Origin: Saccharolobus solfataricus P2
Lineage (GTDB): Archaea; Thermoproteota; Thermoprotei_A; Sulfolobales; Sulfolobaceae
Direction: 5' to 3' (one strand)
Length of the DNA: 64,000 nt
NCBI RefSeq assembly: GCF_000007005.1
Contig: NC_002754.1
Shown here: piece after piece, positions 19,109 through 23,617 of the stretch
Numbering within the stretch: position 1 is the stretch's first letter
Layout of the letters: each line of letters starts with the position of its first letter
Position numbers and translations under genes: made by a program
Notes under the pieces: model-generated
Seen by the model: the letters and a program-made list of their open reading frames with translations, nothing else
Told to the model about the DNA's origin: nothing
The model's database searches: none

Positions 19109-19342
19109 ATGGCAGAAGTTGTAAGAGCCTATATTCTCGTCTCTACTACTGTTGGTAAAGAAATGGAAGTAGCAGATATGGCTAAAAAGGTCTCAGGTGT
19201 AATAAGAGCAGATCCAGTTTATGGTGAATATGACGTAGTAGTAGAAGTAGAGGCCAAGTCTTCTGACGATTTGAAGAAAGTAATATATGAGATAAGAAGG
19301 AATCCGAACATAATAAGAACCGTAACTTTAATAGTAATGTAA
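19109..19342 (+). CDS. Stand-alone Lrp/AsnC ligand-binding (RAM) domain protein
   Basis: AYILV..VGKE...VYGEYDVVVEVE...I.RTVTLI pattern, no HTH. Confidence 0.88.
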   Translation: MAEVVRAYILVSTTVGKEMEVADMAKKVSGVIRADPVYGEYDVVVEVEAKSSDDLKKVIYEIRRNPNIIRTVTLIVM

Positions 19343-20032: not shown

Positions 20033-20209
20033 ATGAGAGTTGTAACATTTAAAGTGGAAGAGGATTTGTTAGAACTATTAGATAGATATGCTATAAAATA
20101 CGGTTTAAATAGATCTGAAGCCATACGTAAAGCCATAGAAAAAATGGTAAGAGATGAGTTATCAAAGGAGAGAGTCCCAGTGGCAAGAGTGGAAAAGATA
20201 AAGCTTTAA
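20033..20209 (+). CDS. aCcr1: 58-aa RHH transcription factor, probable cell-cycle regulator aCcr1 (not in ORF track)
   Basis: Manual translation [58 protein letters not shown]; size, sequence and position match aCcr1 as recalled. Confidence 0.75.
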
Positions 20210-20841
20210 TAAGATAAAGCGTAAACCACTTTCTTGCTCTCCTCTACGTTTTCATCTATGAGATTGTTTTTCAGATCTATTCTTCTTATCTCATATTTTA
20301 GGTTGGCTAAGAACTCTTCTGGGGGATCTAAAGGCATATAGTGCCCTTTTATCCAATAGTGAATCGGGATTATTATTTTGGGTGAAATCTTATTAATTAT
20401 CTCTAGGGCTTCTTTGAAATTTATGGTAATTACACCACCTATAGGTATCAATAGGACATCTGCCCCATATAACTCCTTATAAGTATTCTCTTCAAGGAGA
20501 TGGCCTAGATCCCCAAGGTGTACGATTTTTTTACCATCACTCCTTTGTAGGACGTATATGCTATTTTCCCCTCTTAGTTTACCGTTATACTTATCATGAT
20601 AACTCTTTATTCCCTTTATTGTATAGTTAGAATAGGTTAAGGATCCATAAAAATTAATTTTAACATCTTTGTATTCAAAGATTTGATACGCGTTATGGTC
20701 GTAATGATCATGAGTTACTAAAATTAGGTCTACCTTTTTTATATCCGGTTTAGGTAAACCAATACTTCCTCCATCGTGCGGATCAATTAATATTCTATCA
20801 TCAATTAAAACACAAGAATGTCCGAAATATTTTAGTACCAT
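20206..20841 (-). CDS. Metallo-beta-lactamase-fold Zn hydrolase
   Basis: GHSC, THDHYDH, HLGDLG and IPIHY motifs. Confidence 0.92.
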
Positions 20842-20849
20842 ACAATCGT

Positions 20850-22009
20850 TTAAGAATTCATTAATTTAAGTGCAATGTTTTTCGCATCCTCTACTGTTAC
20901 CTTATTACCTGATTCTGCCAGTTTCTTAATCTCAGCTAGGACTATCTTTAATTTATCGTCTGATAGATATATTCCTTGTTCTTCTAATAATTTTCTTAAC
21001 CCATGTATTCCGCTATGTTTACCTAGTGCTAGTCTTCTGAAATTACCTACTTCTTCTGGTGAAATTGGTTCGTATGTGAATGGGTTTTCTATTACTCCAT
21101 GAACGTGTATCCCAGATTCGTGTCCAAATGCATTATCACCGACAATTGCCTTGAAATAGGGAACTGGTACGCCGGTCATTTCAGCTACAAACCTACTTAC
21201 CTCATATAATTTCCACGTTTTCACATTTGTCTCATAATTTAGTAATTTCTTTATACCCATTACTACTTCCTCTAATGACGCGTTTCCTGCTCTCTCACCT
21301 ATACCATTTACAGTAACATGAGCTTGTCTGGCACCTGCATACACGCCAGCTAAAGAATTTGCTGTTGCTAGTCCGAAATCATTATGGCAATGAACACTTA
21401 CTATTATTCTCTCACCTACGAAGTTTACAATTTTCTTTATCATATCATAGTACTTAAAAGGATGCATTGTCCCTACAGTATCCGGTATATTGATCCTATC
21501 GGCTCCTGCTTCTATTGCAGTTCTAATTGCAGTAAATAGGAAGTCTTCTTCAGTTCTCGTTGCATCCTCTGGACTAAACTCTACTATCATACCGTGATCT
21601 TTTGCGTATTTTACACTTTCATAAATCTTATTTAATACCTCCTCCTTTGTCATCTTTAATTTATATTTCATATGCAATTCGGAAGTCGCTATGAACAAGT
21701 GTATACTCGAGATCCCAGTACTTATTGTCTTATCTATATCGTTCTTATTAGATCTAGATAATCCAATTACTTCTACTTGATCTCCTATCTCTTCAAAAAT
21801 CTTTCTGGTAGCTATGAATTCTCCTTCTGAAGAAGCAGGGAAACCTGCTTCTATTACATCAACACCTAAATCGGCTAACTTTCTCGCTATCATTATCTTT
21901 TGTTCTGTTGTTAAATCTATACCGGGAGCTTGTTCGCCGTCTCTTAACGTGGTATCGAATATTCTAATTTTCTTAGACGTAGAGAATACTCATACCTCGT
22001 ACGCACCAT
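20850..22009 (-). CDS. leuA: 2-isopropylmalate synthase-like enzyme (LeuA/CimA family, no C-terminal regulatory domain) with a frame discontinuity at the 5' end
   Basis: [15 protein letters not shown] (upstream of the tracked ORF), HCHNDFGLA and GIGERAGN; in-frame TGA at 21992-21990 and no ATG/GTG/TTG before the DTTLRDGEQ motif. Confidence 0.85.
21944..22009 (-). other. 21-codon uORF overlapping the leuA 5' end ([21 protein letters not shown])
   Basis: ATG at 22009, stop at 21946-21944; a -1 shift enters the leuA frame. Confidence 0.5.
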
Positions 22010-22028
22010 GATAACTACCGTATAATGC

Positions 22029-22036
22029 TATTTAAA
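22029..22036 (-). promoter_or_regulatory. TATA box (TTTAAATA) of the leuA-MBL unit, predicting a TSS near the ATG at 22009
   Basis: Consensus archaeal TATA whose first T is 27 nt upstream of the ATG. Confidence 0.55.
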
Positions 22037-22041
22037 ACTTA

Positions 22042-22656
22042 CTATTCATTATAATTTAAAACTTGTTCAATTATCATTCTGGCTATTTCTAACTTTTTTC
22101 TTTTTATCATTGATGCCGGTACGTTTCTCTGATAGTATGGTTTAGAGAATTTTCCAACAATTCCAGATTGAAAATCCATCGCGTATAATCTTATTTTACT
22201 AGCCTTCATATACTTCGCTAAAACTACAGCTCTATCTCCGTCAGTGAACCCACCATATAATCTTAAACGACCAAAAGGCATTACTTGTGAATTTGGAATT
22301 ACTTTATCCATTTCCTTGACCTTATGTAGTAGATTGATATTATCACCATGAGCCAATACTACGTATATTGGATTTTTAGGAAAAGTTTGAAGCCCATCTA
22401 AGTCAGTTACTATAATGTCAGGGACAATCCCTATATCTACTAGATAATTAGCTGCACCATCTGCTGCTATTATTACGTCTTCTTTAAGCTTATTTATTTT
22501 ATCTAGCTGAGGACCCGCTCCCACTATCGCAATTTCTCTCCCTTTAATTAACTCTTTCAATTCAGCCTCATCATATTCCTTAGTTATAAGATAGTTCAGT
22601 ATTGATGCAGAGATATAGTCGTCTCTTTCTTTGAATCCAAACCAACTCCTTATCAT
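22042..22656 (-). CDS. mptE: 6-hydroxymethyl-7,8-dihydropterin pyrophosphokinase (MptE/DUF115)
   Basis: IVGAGP, IAADGA, VTDLDG, HGDNI and GGFTDGDRA motifs. Confidence 0.88.
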
Positions 22657-22667
22657 TTTATAAAAAT

Positions 22668-22886
22668 TTATCCACCATAACGTATTATAAAGTAAATTGT
22701 ATCACCTTCTTGTTTAATTATGTTAATCGTATATCTATCTTTTATTATCTCGAAATATGGATTTGCTGATTTTATCTTGAAGATCACATTGTTGTTATTG
22801 AACAAATACTCTATAGCCTCTAATGGGTCACTTGAGCATGTATAAGAGTCTAGGTCAATCGTGAAATTCGTCATATATTTTCTCAA
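22668..22886 (-). CDS. Small hypothetical protein, weakly TusA/SirA-like
   Basis: IDLDSYTC N-terminal pattern; packed in an operon between HEPN and mptE. Confidence 0.5.
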
Positions 22887-23247
22887 CCTCCTCTAGAATT
22901 TTAGATATCTCATCAACTAACATTTCCGCCTCTTTATTCCTTATTACTACAGTTGGAGTTTTCAGAGAGGATTCGTTAATTAAAGTAATTGGAATCAACC
23001 TATATTCCAGATCTCTCAATTTCTTCTCCAACATACTTCCATCATTAAGGAATAGCGCGGTATTCCAAAATAAATCGTACTTAAATACGTCTCTCAGAGA
23101 TAGTAATACCTTAGCTAAATTTTCTACAGTGTCTAAGGTCCTTATTACAGTATAATAGAGGTCTCCGTCCTCAAAGGCTATTTGCGCCTCTTTTAATGTC
23201 CTCCTAGCCCTGAGTAAATATTCGGCGGCTACTAAACTTTTATCCAT
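22855..23247 (-). CDS. HEPN-domain protein (degenerate)
   Basis: AAEYLLRARRTLKEA..AFEDGDL...VENLAKVLL HEPN N-terminal helices; downstream of an MNT-like gene. Confidence 0.7.
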   Translation of the reverse strand: MDKSLVAAEYLLRARRTLKEAQIAFEDGDLYYTVIRTLDTVENLAKVLLSLRDVFKYDLFWNTALFLNDGSMLEKKLRDLEYRLIPITLINESSLKTPTVVIRNKEAEMLVDEISKILEEVEKIYDEFHD

Positions 23248-23617
23248 TTTTCTCTTCCTCTACCGAATATATTACTCTACCGTGAGTATTAAGATATTCT
23301 AATAATGGTATTTCGTATTCTAACTCTTTAGGGGATAGTAATAATCCGTAAATTTTAGGTAAAATTCCGTAATTTAAGATAAAATCTTTTGTTGTCTCCT
23401 TATTTCTAACTTTATTGTAAAAGAACGAAAATATCTCGCCTCTTGCATAAAGTGATATTTTAGAGACCTTATCCAAGGTTATTAGAAAAATTGTCTCCTC
23501 AGTCTCATCATTTTTCTCAAAAGATTTCCCACCAACTATGATCTTTTTAACGTAATCCCCATACCATTCTATAAAAAGAGAGGATAGGTCCTCAATTACA
23601 CGCAGAAGTAACTTCAT
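23240..23617 (-). CDS. Minimal nucleotidyltransferase (MNT)-like protein (degenerate)
   Basis: MNT-like fold pattern (YGDYVKKIIVGG..., LLSPKE...HGRVIYS); GS and DxD motifs absent. Confidence 0.6.
   Translation of the reverse strand: MKLLLRVIEDLSSLFIEWYGDYVKKIIVGGKSFEKNDETEETIFLITLDKVSKISLYARGEIFSFFYNKVRNKETTKDFILNYGILPKIYGLLLSPKELEYEIPLLEYLNTHGRVIYSVEEEKNG

Follow-up and report, generated by a model that had tools for sequence, protein, structure and literature searches.

Synthesis of the isopropylmalate synthase LeuA in Saccharolobus solfataricus P2 may depend on a programmed +1 ribosomal frameshift. In a 64,000-nucleotide stretch of this genome (contig NC_002754.1; hereafter, the window), the leuA frame has no usable in-frame start while a conserved mini-ORF always overlaps it, and for this reason the enzyme is probably made by a +1 slip out of the mini-ORF. 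More specifically, we propose, with a probability of about 0.5, that LeuA synthesis starts at ATG 21993 and then shifts by +1 at a site of the form N-UU-CU-N, where the availability of leucine could be sensed. The slip itself, its direction (+1, not -2) and its response to leucine are all inferred from sequence comparison. A wider proposal would extend this to the whole order: IPMS synthesis would depend on a programmed +1 shift at N_UUC_UN, three to six codons after AUG/GUG, with a conserved start in that place, and the empty A site at a rare Leu codon would directly sense charged tRNA-Leu. We put this forward tentatively and lean somewhat against it.

The protein is classed by its sequence as a Sulfolobales-type isopropylmalate synthase (IPMS) of the LeuA/HCS/CimA DRE-TIM superfamily, with a presumed specificity for 2-oxoisovalerate that follows from the equivalog assignment. 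Its match to the NCBIfam equivalog NF041069 (IPMS_Sufob) reaches 732 bits, above the cut-off of 600, and covers positions 1-370 of the 371 of this profile; its best PDB relatives are also IPMS. The Pfam search returned only PF00682 (HMGL-like, 1.3e-91), the barrel with the DTTLRDGEQ motif, and PF22617 (HCS_D2, 9.8e-27). The LeuA_dimer regulatory domain (PF08502) was absent from the protein in this search and was seen only in distant homologues of about 500 aa, which confirms the statement of an earlier note on this DNA that the enzyme lacks the C-terminal leucine-binding regulatory domain.

Table 1. Elements around the 5' end of leuA (positions in the window; codons of the leuA frame lie at 22010-3k on the minus strand)
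Element	Position	Strand	Remarks
leuA-frame ORF after TGA	20850..21989	-	IPMS catalytic and HCS_D2 domains, no regulatory domain; stop at 20852-20850
TGA in leuA frame	21992-21990	-	overlaps the mini-ORF ATG (A|TGA); read from sequence
Mini-ORF ATG AGT ATT CTC TAC GTC TAA (MSILYV*)	21973..21993	-	one base upstream of leuA frame
Proposed +1 site A_UUC_UCU	21981..21987	-	P site AUU 21987-21985, A site CUC 21984-21982; putative mechanism
Proposed re-pairing on UUC	21986-21984	-	putative; next codon UCU 21983-21981
ATT codon	21966..21968	-	non-canonical start of RefSeq 372-aa models
TATA-box-like TTTTAAATA	22029..22037	-	read from sequence; presumed leuA promoter
Conserved GGTG (GGTGC block)	22004..22007	-	predicted mRNA 5' end and/or Shine-Dalgarno-like element, 10 nt upstream of ATG 21993
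21-codon uORF of the earlier note	21944..22009	-	not conserved outside Saccharolobus
-1 site AGA-AAA-TTA of the earlier note	21965..21973	-	not conserved

After the TGA, the leuA frame reads GTA TTC TCT ACG TCT AAG AAA ATT AGA ATA TTC GAT, and its first canonical start is ATG 21893, located downstream of the catalytic motif. No ATG, GTG or TTG occurs between the TGA and 21893, as had already been reported and is confirmed here, nor does any occur in the window from the preceding in-frame TAA to this TGA. Seven start-less codons are unremarkable by themselves, the chance of zero starts being about 0.66, and the lack of a start is significant because of the comparison with other archaea rather than from a single sequence. 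We compared 22 Sulfolobales loci representing 16 lineages, seven of the loci collected by pattern-based scans of genomes and metagenomes and the rest by exact-protein look-ups, with 148 non-Sulfolobales archaeal homologues as the control. An in-frame canonical start is found in 144 of the 148 controls, against 8 of the 16 Sulfolobales lineages, for which 7.5 would be expected by chance. The starts that do exist (TTG, GTG or ATG, in S. tokodaii, S. acidocaldarius and Metallosphaera, among others) occupy non-homologous positions. Sulfolobales leuA is under no selection for an in-frame start. The earlier view that ordinary in-frame initiation cannot yield the enzyme is supported.

The annotated length of LeuA is inconsistent across the Sulfolobales (336-394 aa), with truncated starts or ATT/ATA starts. 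Hundreds of Saccharolobus contigs share the arrangement seen in the window, and annotators either shorten the gene to 347 aa or assign an ATT or ATA start. In the eight start-less lineages, the 26 codons that precede the first in-frame ATG differ by 298 synonymous versus 131 non-synonymous changes when read in the leuA frame, compared with 33:370 and 18:389 in the other two frames. Such purifying selection on start-less N-terminal codons, extending over a stretch with an invariant 14-residue block, indicates that the region upstream of ATG 21893 is translated. ATG 21893 itself is not conserved, the codon being CTT in Saccharolobus MAGs with 88% protein identity.

The mini-ORF is present in 16/16 Sulfolobales lineages, always one base upstream of the leuA frame. 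An ATG-initiated mini-ORF with.TTCT. in the -1 frame was found at 21 of the 22 Sulfolobales loci, the last one having GTG; among the 148 controls there was a single case in that frame and none in the other. Its products elsewhere are MSILG*, MSVLH*, MRILE*, MGNYIL* and similar, with a length of 5-11 codons and an invariant N-UU-CU-N core, and TTCT is the sole block upstream of the catalytic motif that is invariant across the 16 lineages. The pattern of substitutions argues for the mini-frame. Its Ser codon switches between AGT and TCA/TCT with Ser retained, and its Leu codon is CTC, CTT or CTA throughout, whereas in the leuA frame the overlapping residue can be S, L, F or Y. The last base of TTC is never T, though TTT makes up 67% of Phe codons, and the NUU codon is found with all four first bases. 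One point against the +1 model is that the constraint on NUU and the reading of TTC as Phe in the leuA frame are partly confounded. When the window was scanned for the mini-ORF motif, two other matches appeared, both inside or antisense to ordinary genes, and leuA is the only gene 5' end in the window with such a motif.

According to the proposed mechanism, initiation would take place at ATG 21993-21991, the presumed true start of LeuA, and would bring a peptidyl-tRNA onto NUU in the P site with the rare Leu codon CUY still to be decoded in the A site. The P-site tRNA could then slip one base forward onto UUC, and the ribosome would continue with UCU ACG UCU AAG AAA AUU in the leuA frame to produce a predicted enzyme of about 380 aa. 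Ribosomes decoding CUY normally would terminate a few codons later without making the enzyme. The slip would compete with incoming Leu-tRNA(GAG), and a shortage of charged tRNA-Leu should therefore let a larger share of ribosomes go on to make IPMS. A leucine-dependent slip would, in turn, give feedback control to an enzyme devoid of the usual leucine-binding domain.

The locus combines a short 0-frame ORF, an overlapping start-less ORF, a conserved re-pairing site and a rare A-site codon, the elements looked for in +1 frameshifting, and an ORF able to reach leuA by a +1 shift exists in all 16 lineages. The A-site codon is always a Leu codon, CUY or CUA; by codon usage in 60 ORFs of the window, CTC accounts for 5.3% and CTT for 13% of Leu codons. 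It is the single Leu codon of the mini-ORF in 15 of the 16 lineages, the lineage L175 having two. By pairing rules, the move from NUU to UUC would keep two of three pairs for Ile and Val and all three, one of them a G·U wobble, for Phe and Leu. Several observations speak against the +1 model: half of the lineages have an in-frame start usable without any shift, first-position pairing after the slip from AUU to UUC would be a U-U mismatch, no stimulatory RNA structure is conserved, and near-cognate ATT, ATA or AAG codons lie downstream in every start-less lineage. Against sensing, only one Leu codon would act as the sensor, where classical leaders have several.

Upstream of the mini-ORF, a TTTAWAWA block is aligned in most Sulfolobales orthologues, 31-44 nt from the mini-ORF start. 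The GGTGC block is kept in Saccharolobus, Metallosphaera yellowstonensis, Sulfuracidifex and two of three Acidianus species, and is absent in A. manzaensis and M. javensis. A rough TATA+30 estimate lands on GGTG, which is not a conserved start, because its frame relative to the mini-ORF varies. The alignment of the leuA leader revealed no conserved RNA structure (RNAalifold -1.1 kcal/mol, no covariation), and an Rfam search of the leader gave no match. A riboswitch, T-box or attenuator was rejected for want of a conserved structure, and the features of leader-peptide attenuation are missing: there are no covarying hairpins, no Rfam match and, outside L175, no second Leu codon. A C/D-box or K-turn-like reading of GGGATGAG, made by eye, was abandoned, with no D box downstream and no Rfam match. 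Likewise, GAGNATNCTC was considered as a palindromic transcription-factor site, but its GAG is not conserved in S. tokodaii and Sulfuracidifex. Transcriptional slippage was discarded too, as the A-runs (7 A in S. tokodaii, L165 and L001) are absent in Metallosphaera and A. copahuensis.

Other ways to obtain the enzyme have to be weighed against the +1 shift. The mini-ORF could be a regulatory leader only, with LeuA initiated separately at a near-cognate codon (ATT 21968, or ATA/AAG elsewhere), maybe by reinitiation, and at the canonical TTG or GTG where present. ATT 21968 and ACG 21980 are located where the earlier note had placed them as alternative starts, and the NCBI models do begin at ATT or ATA (372, 370 and 379 aa), with position 1 of the NF041069 profile aligned with the ATT codon. 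In every start-less lineage, the stretch from the mini-ORF stop to the catalytic motif contains a near-cognate codon, and half of the lineages have canonical in-frame starts; however, by our calculation near-cognate codons are expected by chance in about 70% of such stretches, and no SD-like element precedes those of the start-less lineages. The ATT position, moreover, reads GTA, GTT or GTC in five lineages (A. copahuensis, A. infernus, A. manzaensis, Sulfuracidifex and L082) without any conserved alternative start, and the invariance of the NUU third base and of the C of TTC is left unexplained, so we consider separate initiation unlikely, albeit a reading to be taken seriously. A -2 shift from the same ATG, in which peptidyl-tRNA-Leu(GAG) on CUC would re-pair on UUC to give MSIL-STSKK, fits the same UUCUY conservation, and by pairing rules the GAG anticodon pairs well with UUC (G-C, A-U, G·U). 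Leucine would then be incorporated and its supply need not matter. Such an event is nevertheless improbable: -2 shifts are uncommon and in most cases depend on trans-acting stimulators, the CUA codon of L175 belongs to a different tRNA, whose re-pairing on UUC would be poor, and a -2 shift gives no reason for the choice of the rarest Leu codon.

The earlier note had proposed that translation starts leaderless at ATG 22009 and that tRNA-Lys then slips by -1 at AGA-AAA-UUA when leucine is short. The ATG does open a 21-codon ORF with CTA, CTA and TTA, both this ORF and the A-rich site are present in the window and in Saccharolobus MAGs, and, judging by the distance from the TATA box, the mRNA could begin near 22009-22004. 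Yet this ATG is conserved only in Saccharolobus, the equivalent codon in relatives being TTG, GTG or TCG in a frame that varies relative to leuA, and A_AAA_UUA is absent in Metallosphaera, Acidianus and Sulfuracidifex. In addition, A. manzaensis, A. infernus and L082, start-less as well, have no ORF in that frame, the -1 fusion peptide has no counterpart in any homologue, and no downstream structure is conserved, and the heptamer and the uORF are restricted to Saccharolobus. The 5' alignment did disclose a conserved out-of-frame ATG, but it is ATG 21993, in the other frame. Recoding at a leucine codon stands as the best available explanation, while its specific -1 form is not supported and appears very improbable. 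A pseudogene, a 1-bp indel, a sequencing error or a truncated enzyme from ATG 21893 deserves hardly any credence: many annotations give 347 aa from this ATG, but the same arrangement recurs in hundreds of contigs (S. islandicus, S. shibatae and S. solfataricus, all Saccharolobus strains being alike) and in other genera, no orthologue has a continuous frame from ATG 22009, and truncation conflicts with the strong purifying selection upstream of the unconserved ATG 21893. Just as implausible is translation that begins at an in-frame start further upstream and passes TGA 21992 by readthrough or by recoding as Cys, Trp or Sec. The aligned codon is TGA, TGT, TGC or TGG depending on the lineage, a Cys/Trp versus TGA pattern that resembles selenoprotein alignments, but what varies is just the base that opens codon 2 of the mini-ORF. 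ENA gene callers placed 'W' there (P0002), giving 390-aa proteins that look like a continuous ORF in relatives; the DNA has TGA, translated under another genetic code, and the P0002 locus does not translate to the query. No in-frame start lies upstream in the window, and A. copahuensis has two stops, TAG then TGA. Sulfolobales are not known to have Sec machinery.

The proposed +1 shift resembles several known systems. With bacterial prfB (RF2, CUU_UGA_C) it shares a short 0-frame ORF, an NUU P-site tRNA slipping +1 and a slow A-site codon that sets the efficiency, and it would form a prfB-like autoregulatory loop because the sensed signal is tied to the gene's own product. In prfB, however, the A site holds a stop and senses RF2, whereas that of leuA holds a sense Leu codon and would sense charged tRNA-Leu; prfB, a bacterial gene, also has a closely spaced internal SD stimulator, for which the leuA locus offers no evident equivalent at that spacing. 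In influenza A PA-X (UCC_UUU_CGU) and yeast Ty1 (CUU_AGG_C), UUU or CUU similarly re-pairs on UUC or UUA at a rare A-site sense codon without downstream structure, but there the rare codon encodes Arg and not the amino acid that the encoded pathway produces, sets a product ratio rather than serving as a proposed metabolic sensor, and belongs to viral or retrotransposon genes. Bacterial leuL attenuation also places a short ORF with rare Leu codons upstream of leuA to report tRNA-Leu charging, yet it uses tandem Leu codons and terminator/antiterminator hairpins, in contrast to the one Leu codon, the lack of conserved structure and the leader overlapping the enzyme frame seen here.

The hungry-codon frameshifting of E. 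coli (Gallant and Lindsley; cited in PMC8211752 and PMC5009743) follows the same principle, limitation of one aminoacyl-tRNA emptying the A site so that the P-site tRNA slips. It is an error or laboratory phenomenon there, whereas in leuA it would be a conserved, programmed part of expression; its natural use is described as unclear in PMC5009743. A case from the same organism is the -1 frameshift in fucA1 of S. solfataricus, a split gene expressed by ribosomal frameshifting (PMC1616953). It differs from leuA in its direction, its A_AAA_AAU site, its putative stem-loop and its rare codons, the leuA arrangement being order-wide and +1. Furthermore, the interruption of fucA1 is limited to two S. 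solfataricus strains, other Sulfolobales having the gene in full length, and a 2021 review gives its -1 shift as the single cellular case of archaeal recoding (PMC8211752). Our literature search turned up no such case of frameshift control at a leucine codon.

If true, the +1 shift in leuA would be the first for a cellular gene of an archaeon and, within Crenarchaeota, the first recoding event conserved across a whole order. Leucine synthesis would also be the first natural example of an amino-acid pathway that is regulated by hungry-codon frameshifting at a codon for its own amino acid. Since the site comprises six nucleotides and tractable hosts are available (S. acidocaldarius and S. islandicus), the sensing of starvation through frame maintenance is directly testable. 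Confirmation would settle the expression of a conserved, essential biosynthetic gene and mend its annotation, and would bring a programmed +1 frameshift to the archaea, where very few recoding events are known. It would also mean that hungry-codon slippage, seen since the 1990s chiefly as an error of translation, has been put to regulatory use. In the Sulfolobales it would replace the allosteric leucine-binding domain absent from the enzyme.

The reading frame of isopropylmalate synthase (IPMS, LeuA) in the window, hereafter the leuA frame, follows codon positions 22010-3k and runs as …HGAYEV-TGA and then through a further 20-residue stretch (minus strand, sequence read-out). As an earlier note had stated, it lacks a canonical start before ATG 21893, and the catalytic motif lies upstream of this ATG. 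The start-less leuA frame is confirmed, and the other elements described in that note occupy the positions assigned to them. Against the NCBIfam equivalog 'IPMS_Sufob' (curated cut-off 600), the encoded protein reaches 732 bits; its closest solved structures are isopropylmalate synthases, and its closest named protein is the S. shibatae IPMS (98% identity). Its only domains are HMGL-like and HCS_D2; the domain search gave no LeuA_dimer, in agreement with the proposed lack of a C-terminal Leu-binding regulatory domain.

Positions of leuA-related elements and neighbouring genes in the window
Feature	Position	Strand	Remarks
RAM gene	19109-19342	+	77-aa stand-alone Lrp/AsnC ligand-binding (RAM) domain protein, without DNA-binding domain (PF01037, 3.3e-11)
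MBL gene	20206-20841	-	metallo-beta-lactamase fold (PF13483), 8 nt after leuA
ATG	21893	-	first ATG/GTG/TTG in leuA frame, 21 codons past the D of DTTLRDGEQ
ATT	21968	-	non-canonical start in RefSeq models
AGA-AAA-TTA	21973-21965	-	-1 slip site of the earlier note
ACG	21980	-	non-canonical start considered in the earlier note
AUU_CUC	21987-21982	-	candidate +1 shift site
TGA	21992-21990	-	in leuA frame
ATG	21993	-	mini-ORF MSILYV*
ATG	22009	-	21-codon uORF
MptE-like gene	22042-22656	-	pterin diphosphokinase, precedes leuA
Two small genes	22855-23247; 23240-23617	-	overlapping, upstream of MptE-like gene

Sixteen separate Sulfolobales lineages contributed leuA 5' regions: the window, two Saccharolobus MAGs (metagenome-assembled genomes), Acidianus manzaensis, A. 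copahuensis, A. infernus, Sulfuracidifex metallicus, Metallosphaera yellowstonensis, M. javensis, Sulfurisphaera tokodaii, Sulfolobus acidocaldarius and five uncultured lineages; 148 loci from other archaea were taken as controls. DTTLRDGEQ is preceded by a canonical start in frame in 8/16 lineages versus 144/148 controls. Since the former value is close to the chance expectation of 7.5/16 (from local base composition and open-stretch length) and the existing starts are at non-homologous positions, nothing in these sequences indicates that an in-frame start is under selection in Sulfolobales. Indeed, the start stands two codons ahead of a TGY codon in S. tokodaii, S. acidocaldarius and lineage L001, immediately 3' of the TGA in Metallosphaera and lineage L175, and farther downstream in lineages L084 and L174. 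The four controls missing such a start are L104 and L105 (around 1420-1515), from a hot-spring metagenome with 53% identity to the query, and L059 and L158 (around the match start). L104/L105 read GTG GGG GTG GTG GGC TAG GCT TCT ACC…, with CTT CTA in another frame, and L059 resembles a 1-bp indel beside an ATG.

Codon differences indicate that the start-less region is translated. Over 26 codons, from [IV]R[IV][FL]DTT through the position of ATG 21893, the eight start-less lineages show 298 synonymous versus 131 non-synonymous differences in the leuA frame, compared with 33:370 and 18:389 in the other two frames. A stretch of 14 residues within this region is invariant in these lineages. ATG 21893 itself is not conserved: Saccharolobus MAGs with 88% protein identity have CTT there.

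All 16 lineages carry a mini-ORF one base upstream of the leuA frame: MSILYV* in the window, MSILYD* or MSILYDQKN* in the Saccharolobus MAGs, MSILG* in S. tokodaii and S. acidocaldarius, MSVLH* in Metallosphaera, MSILSW* in A. copahuensis, MSILCTE* in A. manzaensis, MRILE* in A. infernus, MRILHG* in Sulfuracidifex, MRFLR* in L001, MGNYIL* or MGNYILHV* in L082 and L174, VDSILE* (GTG start) in L084 and MSGRLLSK* in L175. An ORF competent for a +1 shift into leuA is likewise present in 16/16 lineages. A scan for ATG, 1-4 codons and NTTCTN, at a total of at most 12 aa, matched 21/22 Sulfolobales loci; among the controls, it matched 1/148 in that frame and 0/148 in the alternative one. Over both strands of the whole window, the leuA motif is the only one at the 5' end of a long +1-frame ORF. 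The Desulfurococcales IPMS (proteins P0088-P0092; Ignicoccus islandicus L176:1501-1570), also without the regulatory domain, have no mini-ORF; their in-frame start, M-L-I-V-E (GTG CTT ATT GTT GAG), is followed by three NUU branched-chain amino-acid codons in a row.

In the 16-lineage alignment, TTCT is the sole invariant block upstream of the catalytic motif, and it is read as N-UU CU-N in the mini-ORF frame. The codon 5' of the mini-ORF Leu codon is AUU, GUU, UUU or CUU, with a free first base and the last two fixed; ATA, the preferred Ile codon (52%), is absent there. The Leu codon is CTC, CTT or CTA, CTC (5.3% of Leu codons) being one of the two rarest, and the overlapping leuA-frame residue varies between Ser, Leu, Phe and Tyr. 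The C of TTC is never T, though TTT makes up 67% of Phe codons. Ser at codon 2 of the mini-ORF is specified by AGT in ten lineages and in two others by TCA or TCT, a switch of codon family; at this position, the leuA frame reads stop-Val, Cys-Gln or Cys-Leu. This pattern points to a nucleotide-level slip site with a selected Leu codon, and not to a conserved residue in the enzyme frame. Neither a conserved RNA structure at the candidate shift site nor a match to the Rfam families compared with it was found; +1 sites are usually without conserved RNA structure.

Annotation of the gene is inconsistent, IPMS lengths ranging from 336 to 394 aa across Sulfolobales. The 90% cluster of the window LeuA draws on hundreds of contigs, with proteins of S. 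islandicus, S. shibatae and S. solfataricus that are annotated either with 347 aa, beginning at the internal ATG, or with 370/372 aa and an initial 'MRIFDTT'. The 372-aa form begins at an ATT codon, a non-canonical start picked by NCBI. Such initiation at ATT 21968 is conceivable for Saccharolobus alone, but five other start-less lineages have GTA, GTT or GTC at the aligned position, which leaves no uniform alternative start. ENA/Logan proteins of 390 aa (P0002, P0004, P0006 and P0007, Saccharolobus-like IPMS; metagenome contigs L163 and L164) carry Trp at the TGA. We rejected them as evidence for a continuous ORF: the DNA has TGA at this point, and under table 11 the locus 'does not translate to the query'. 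The gene caller evidently read TGA as Trp under another genetic code, and the resulting entries falsely suggest continuity. Conservation across Sulfolobales contradicts the 1-bp deletion or sequencing error entertained earlier, and a pseudogene as well; TGA readthrough is contradicted both by this conservation and by the lack of a start upstream of the TGA.

The earlier note had proposed a start at ATG 22009 and, upon leucine starvation, a -1 slip at A_AAA_UUA. However, the uORF occurs in Saccharolobus only, the equivalent triplet being TTG, GTG or TCG elsewhere, and the slip site is not conserved in the Sulfolobales alignment. Moreover, the start-less A. manzaensis, A. infernus and L082 are without any ORF allowing a -1 shift into leuA, and no N-terminus like the predicted 14-residue fusion was found among homologues. 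The conserved GGTG also changes its frame relative to leuA from genus to genus: in Saccharolobus it is in the frame one base downstream of that of leuA, in Metallosphaera it shares the leuA frame, and in A. copahuensis, A. infernus and Sulfuracidifex it is in the mini-ORF frame. The proposal is partly supported: the general idea of recoding coupled to a leucine codon stands, and its start, site and direction do not. A shift of -2, with tRNA-Leu moving from CUC onto UUC, fits the same motif but not L175, where the codon is CUA. Collectively, the comparative sequence data show a conserved start and site and no other uniform route to the LeuA protein. They are best explained by a conserved programmed +1 frameshift at AUU_CUC after initiation at ATG 21993 (probability roughly 0.5); a frameshift of either direction from this ATG is somewhat more probable.

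The MptE-like/leuA/MBL/RHH order is kept in most fetched Sulfolobales loci (L161-L173), except that MptE-like is not called in L172 and that L174 and L175 have other neighbours; this suggests a leuA-MBL operon. In S. tokodaii, S. acidocaldarius, A. infernus, A. manzaensis, M. javensis and L174, the same RAM gene is found some 1.4 kb downstream of leuA; its product might serve in trans as an amino-acid-binding partner of an IPMS without its own regulatory domain. One of the two small genes has a weak HEPN-domain match (E 0.0028), as does its S. tokodaii counterpart; they may form a HEPN/nucleotidyltransferase-type pair in conserved synteny with leuA.

For the +1 frameshift, we infer the slip, its direction and a leucine response as follows. 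The ribosome would initiate at the conserved ATG, 31-44 nt from a TATA-like box; by this rough spacing estimate, the ATG would be leaderless in S. tokodaii, S. acidocaldarius, L001 and L175, and preceded in the other lineages by a 9-14-nt leader beginning, in most of them, on the conserved GGTG. With peptidyl-tRNA on NUU and a rare CUY in the A site, the tRNA would re-pair on UUC, its G34 trading a G·U wobble for a G-C pair, while the first-position pair would be retained for Phe, become a G·U wobble for Leu and be lost for Ile/Val. The next codon (UCU in the window) would fall in the leuA frame, giving a product of about 380 aa with a predicted 15-residue N-terminus; ribosomes that do not slip would terminate 0-5 codons further on.

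This arrangement resembles prfB, an autoregulatory loop with a +1 slip at an NUU codon in the P site close to the end of a short 0-frame ORF, as well as the rare-codon shift sites of influenza PA-X (UUU_CGU) and Ty1 (CUU_AGG). The bacterial leu leader peptide follows a parallel logic, though leuA shows no attenuator structure. Unlike in all these systems, the signal in the A site would be a sense codon specifying the very amino acid that the pathway makes, and the host is archaeal. Full-text literature searches returned no paper joining IPMS, Sulfolobus and frameshifting. According to a 2021 review, the fucA1 -1 shift is the sole established frameshift in archaeal cellular genes, +1 shifts being mentioned for a haloarchaeal virus only (PMC8211752), and a 2016 compendium called the natural use of hungry-codon shifting unclear (PMC5009743). 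The slip would compete with Leu-tRNA(GAG) binding, and IPMS output should therefore rise when tRNA-Leu(GAG) is uncharged. Leucine sensing by the candidate shift site is a tentative function, judged less likely than not; a Leu-responsive slip would compensate for the absent allosteric domain of IPMS.
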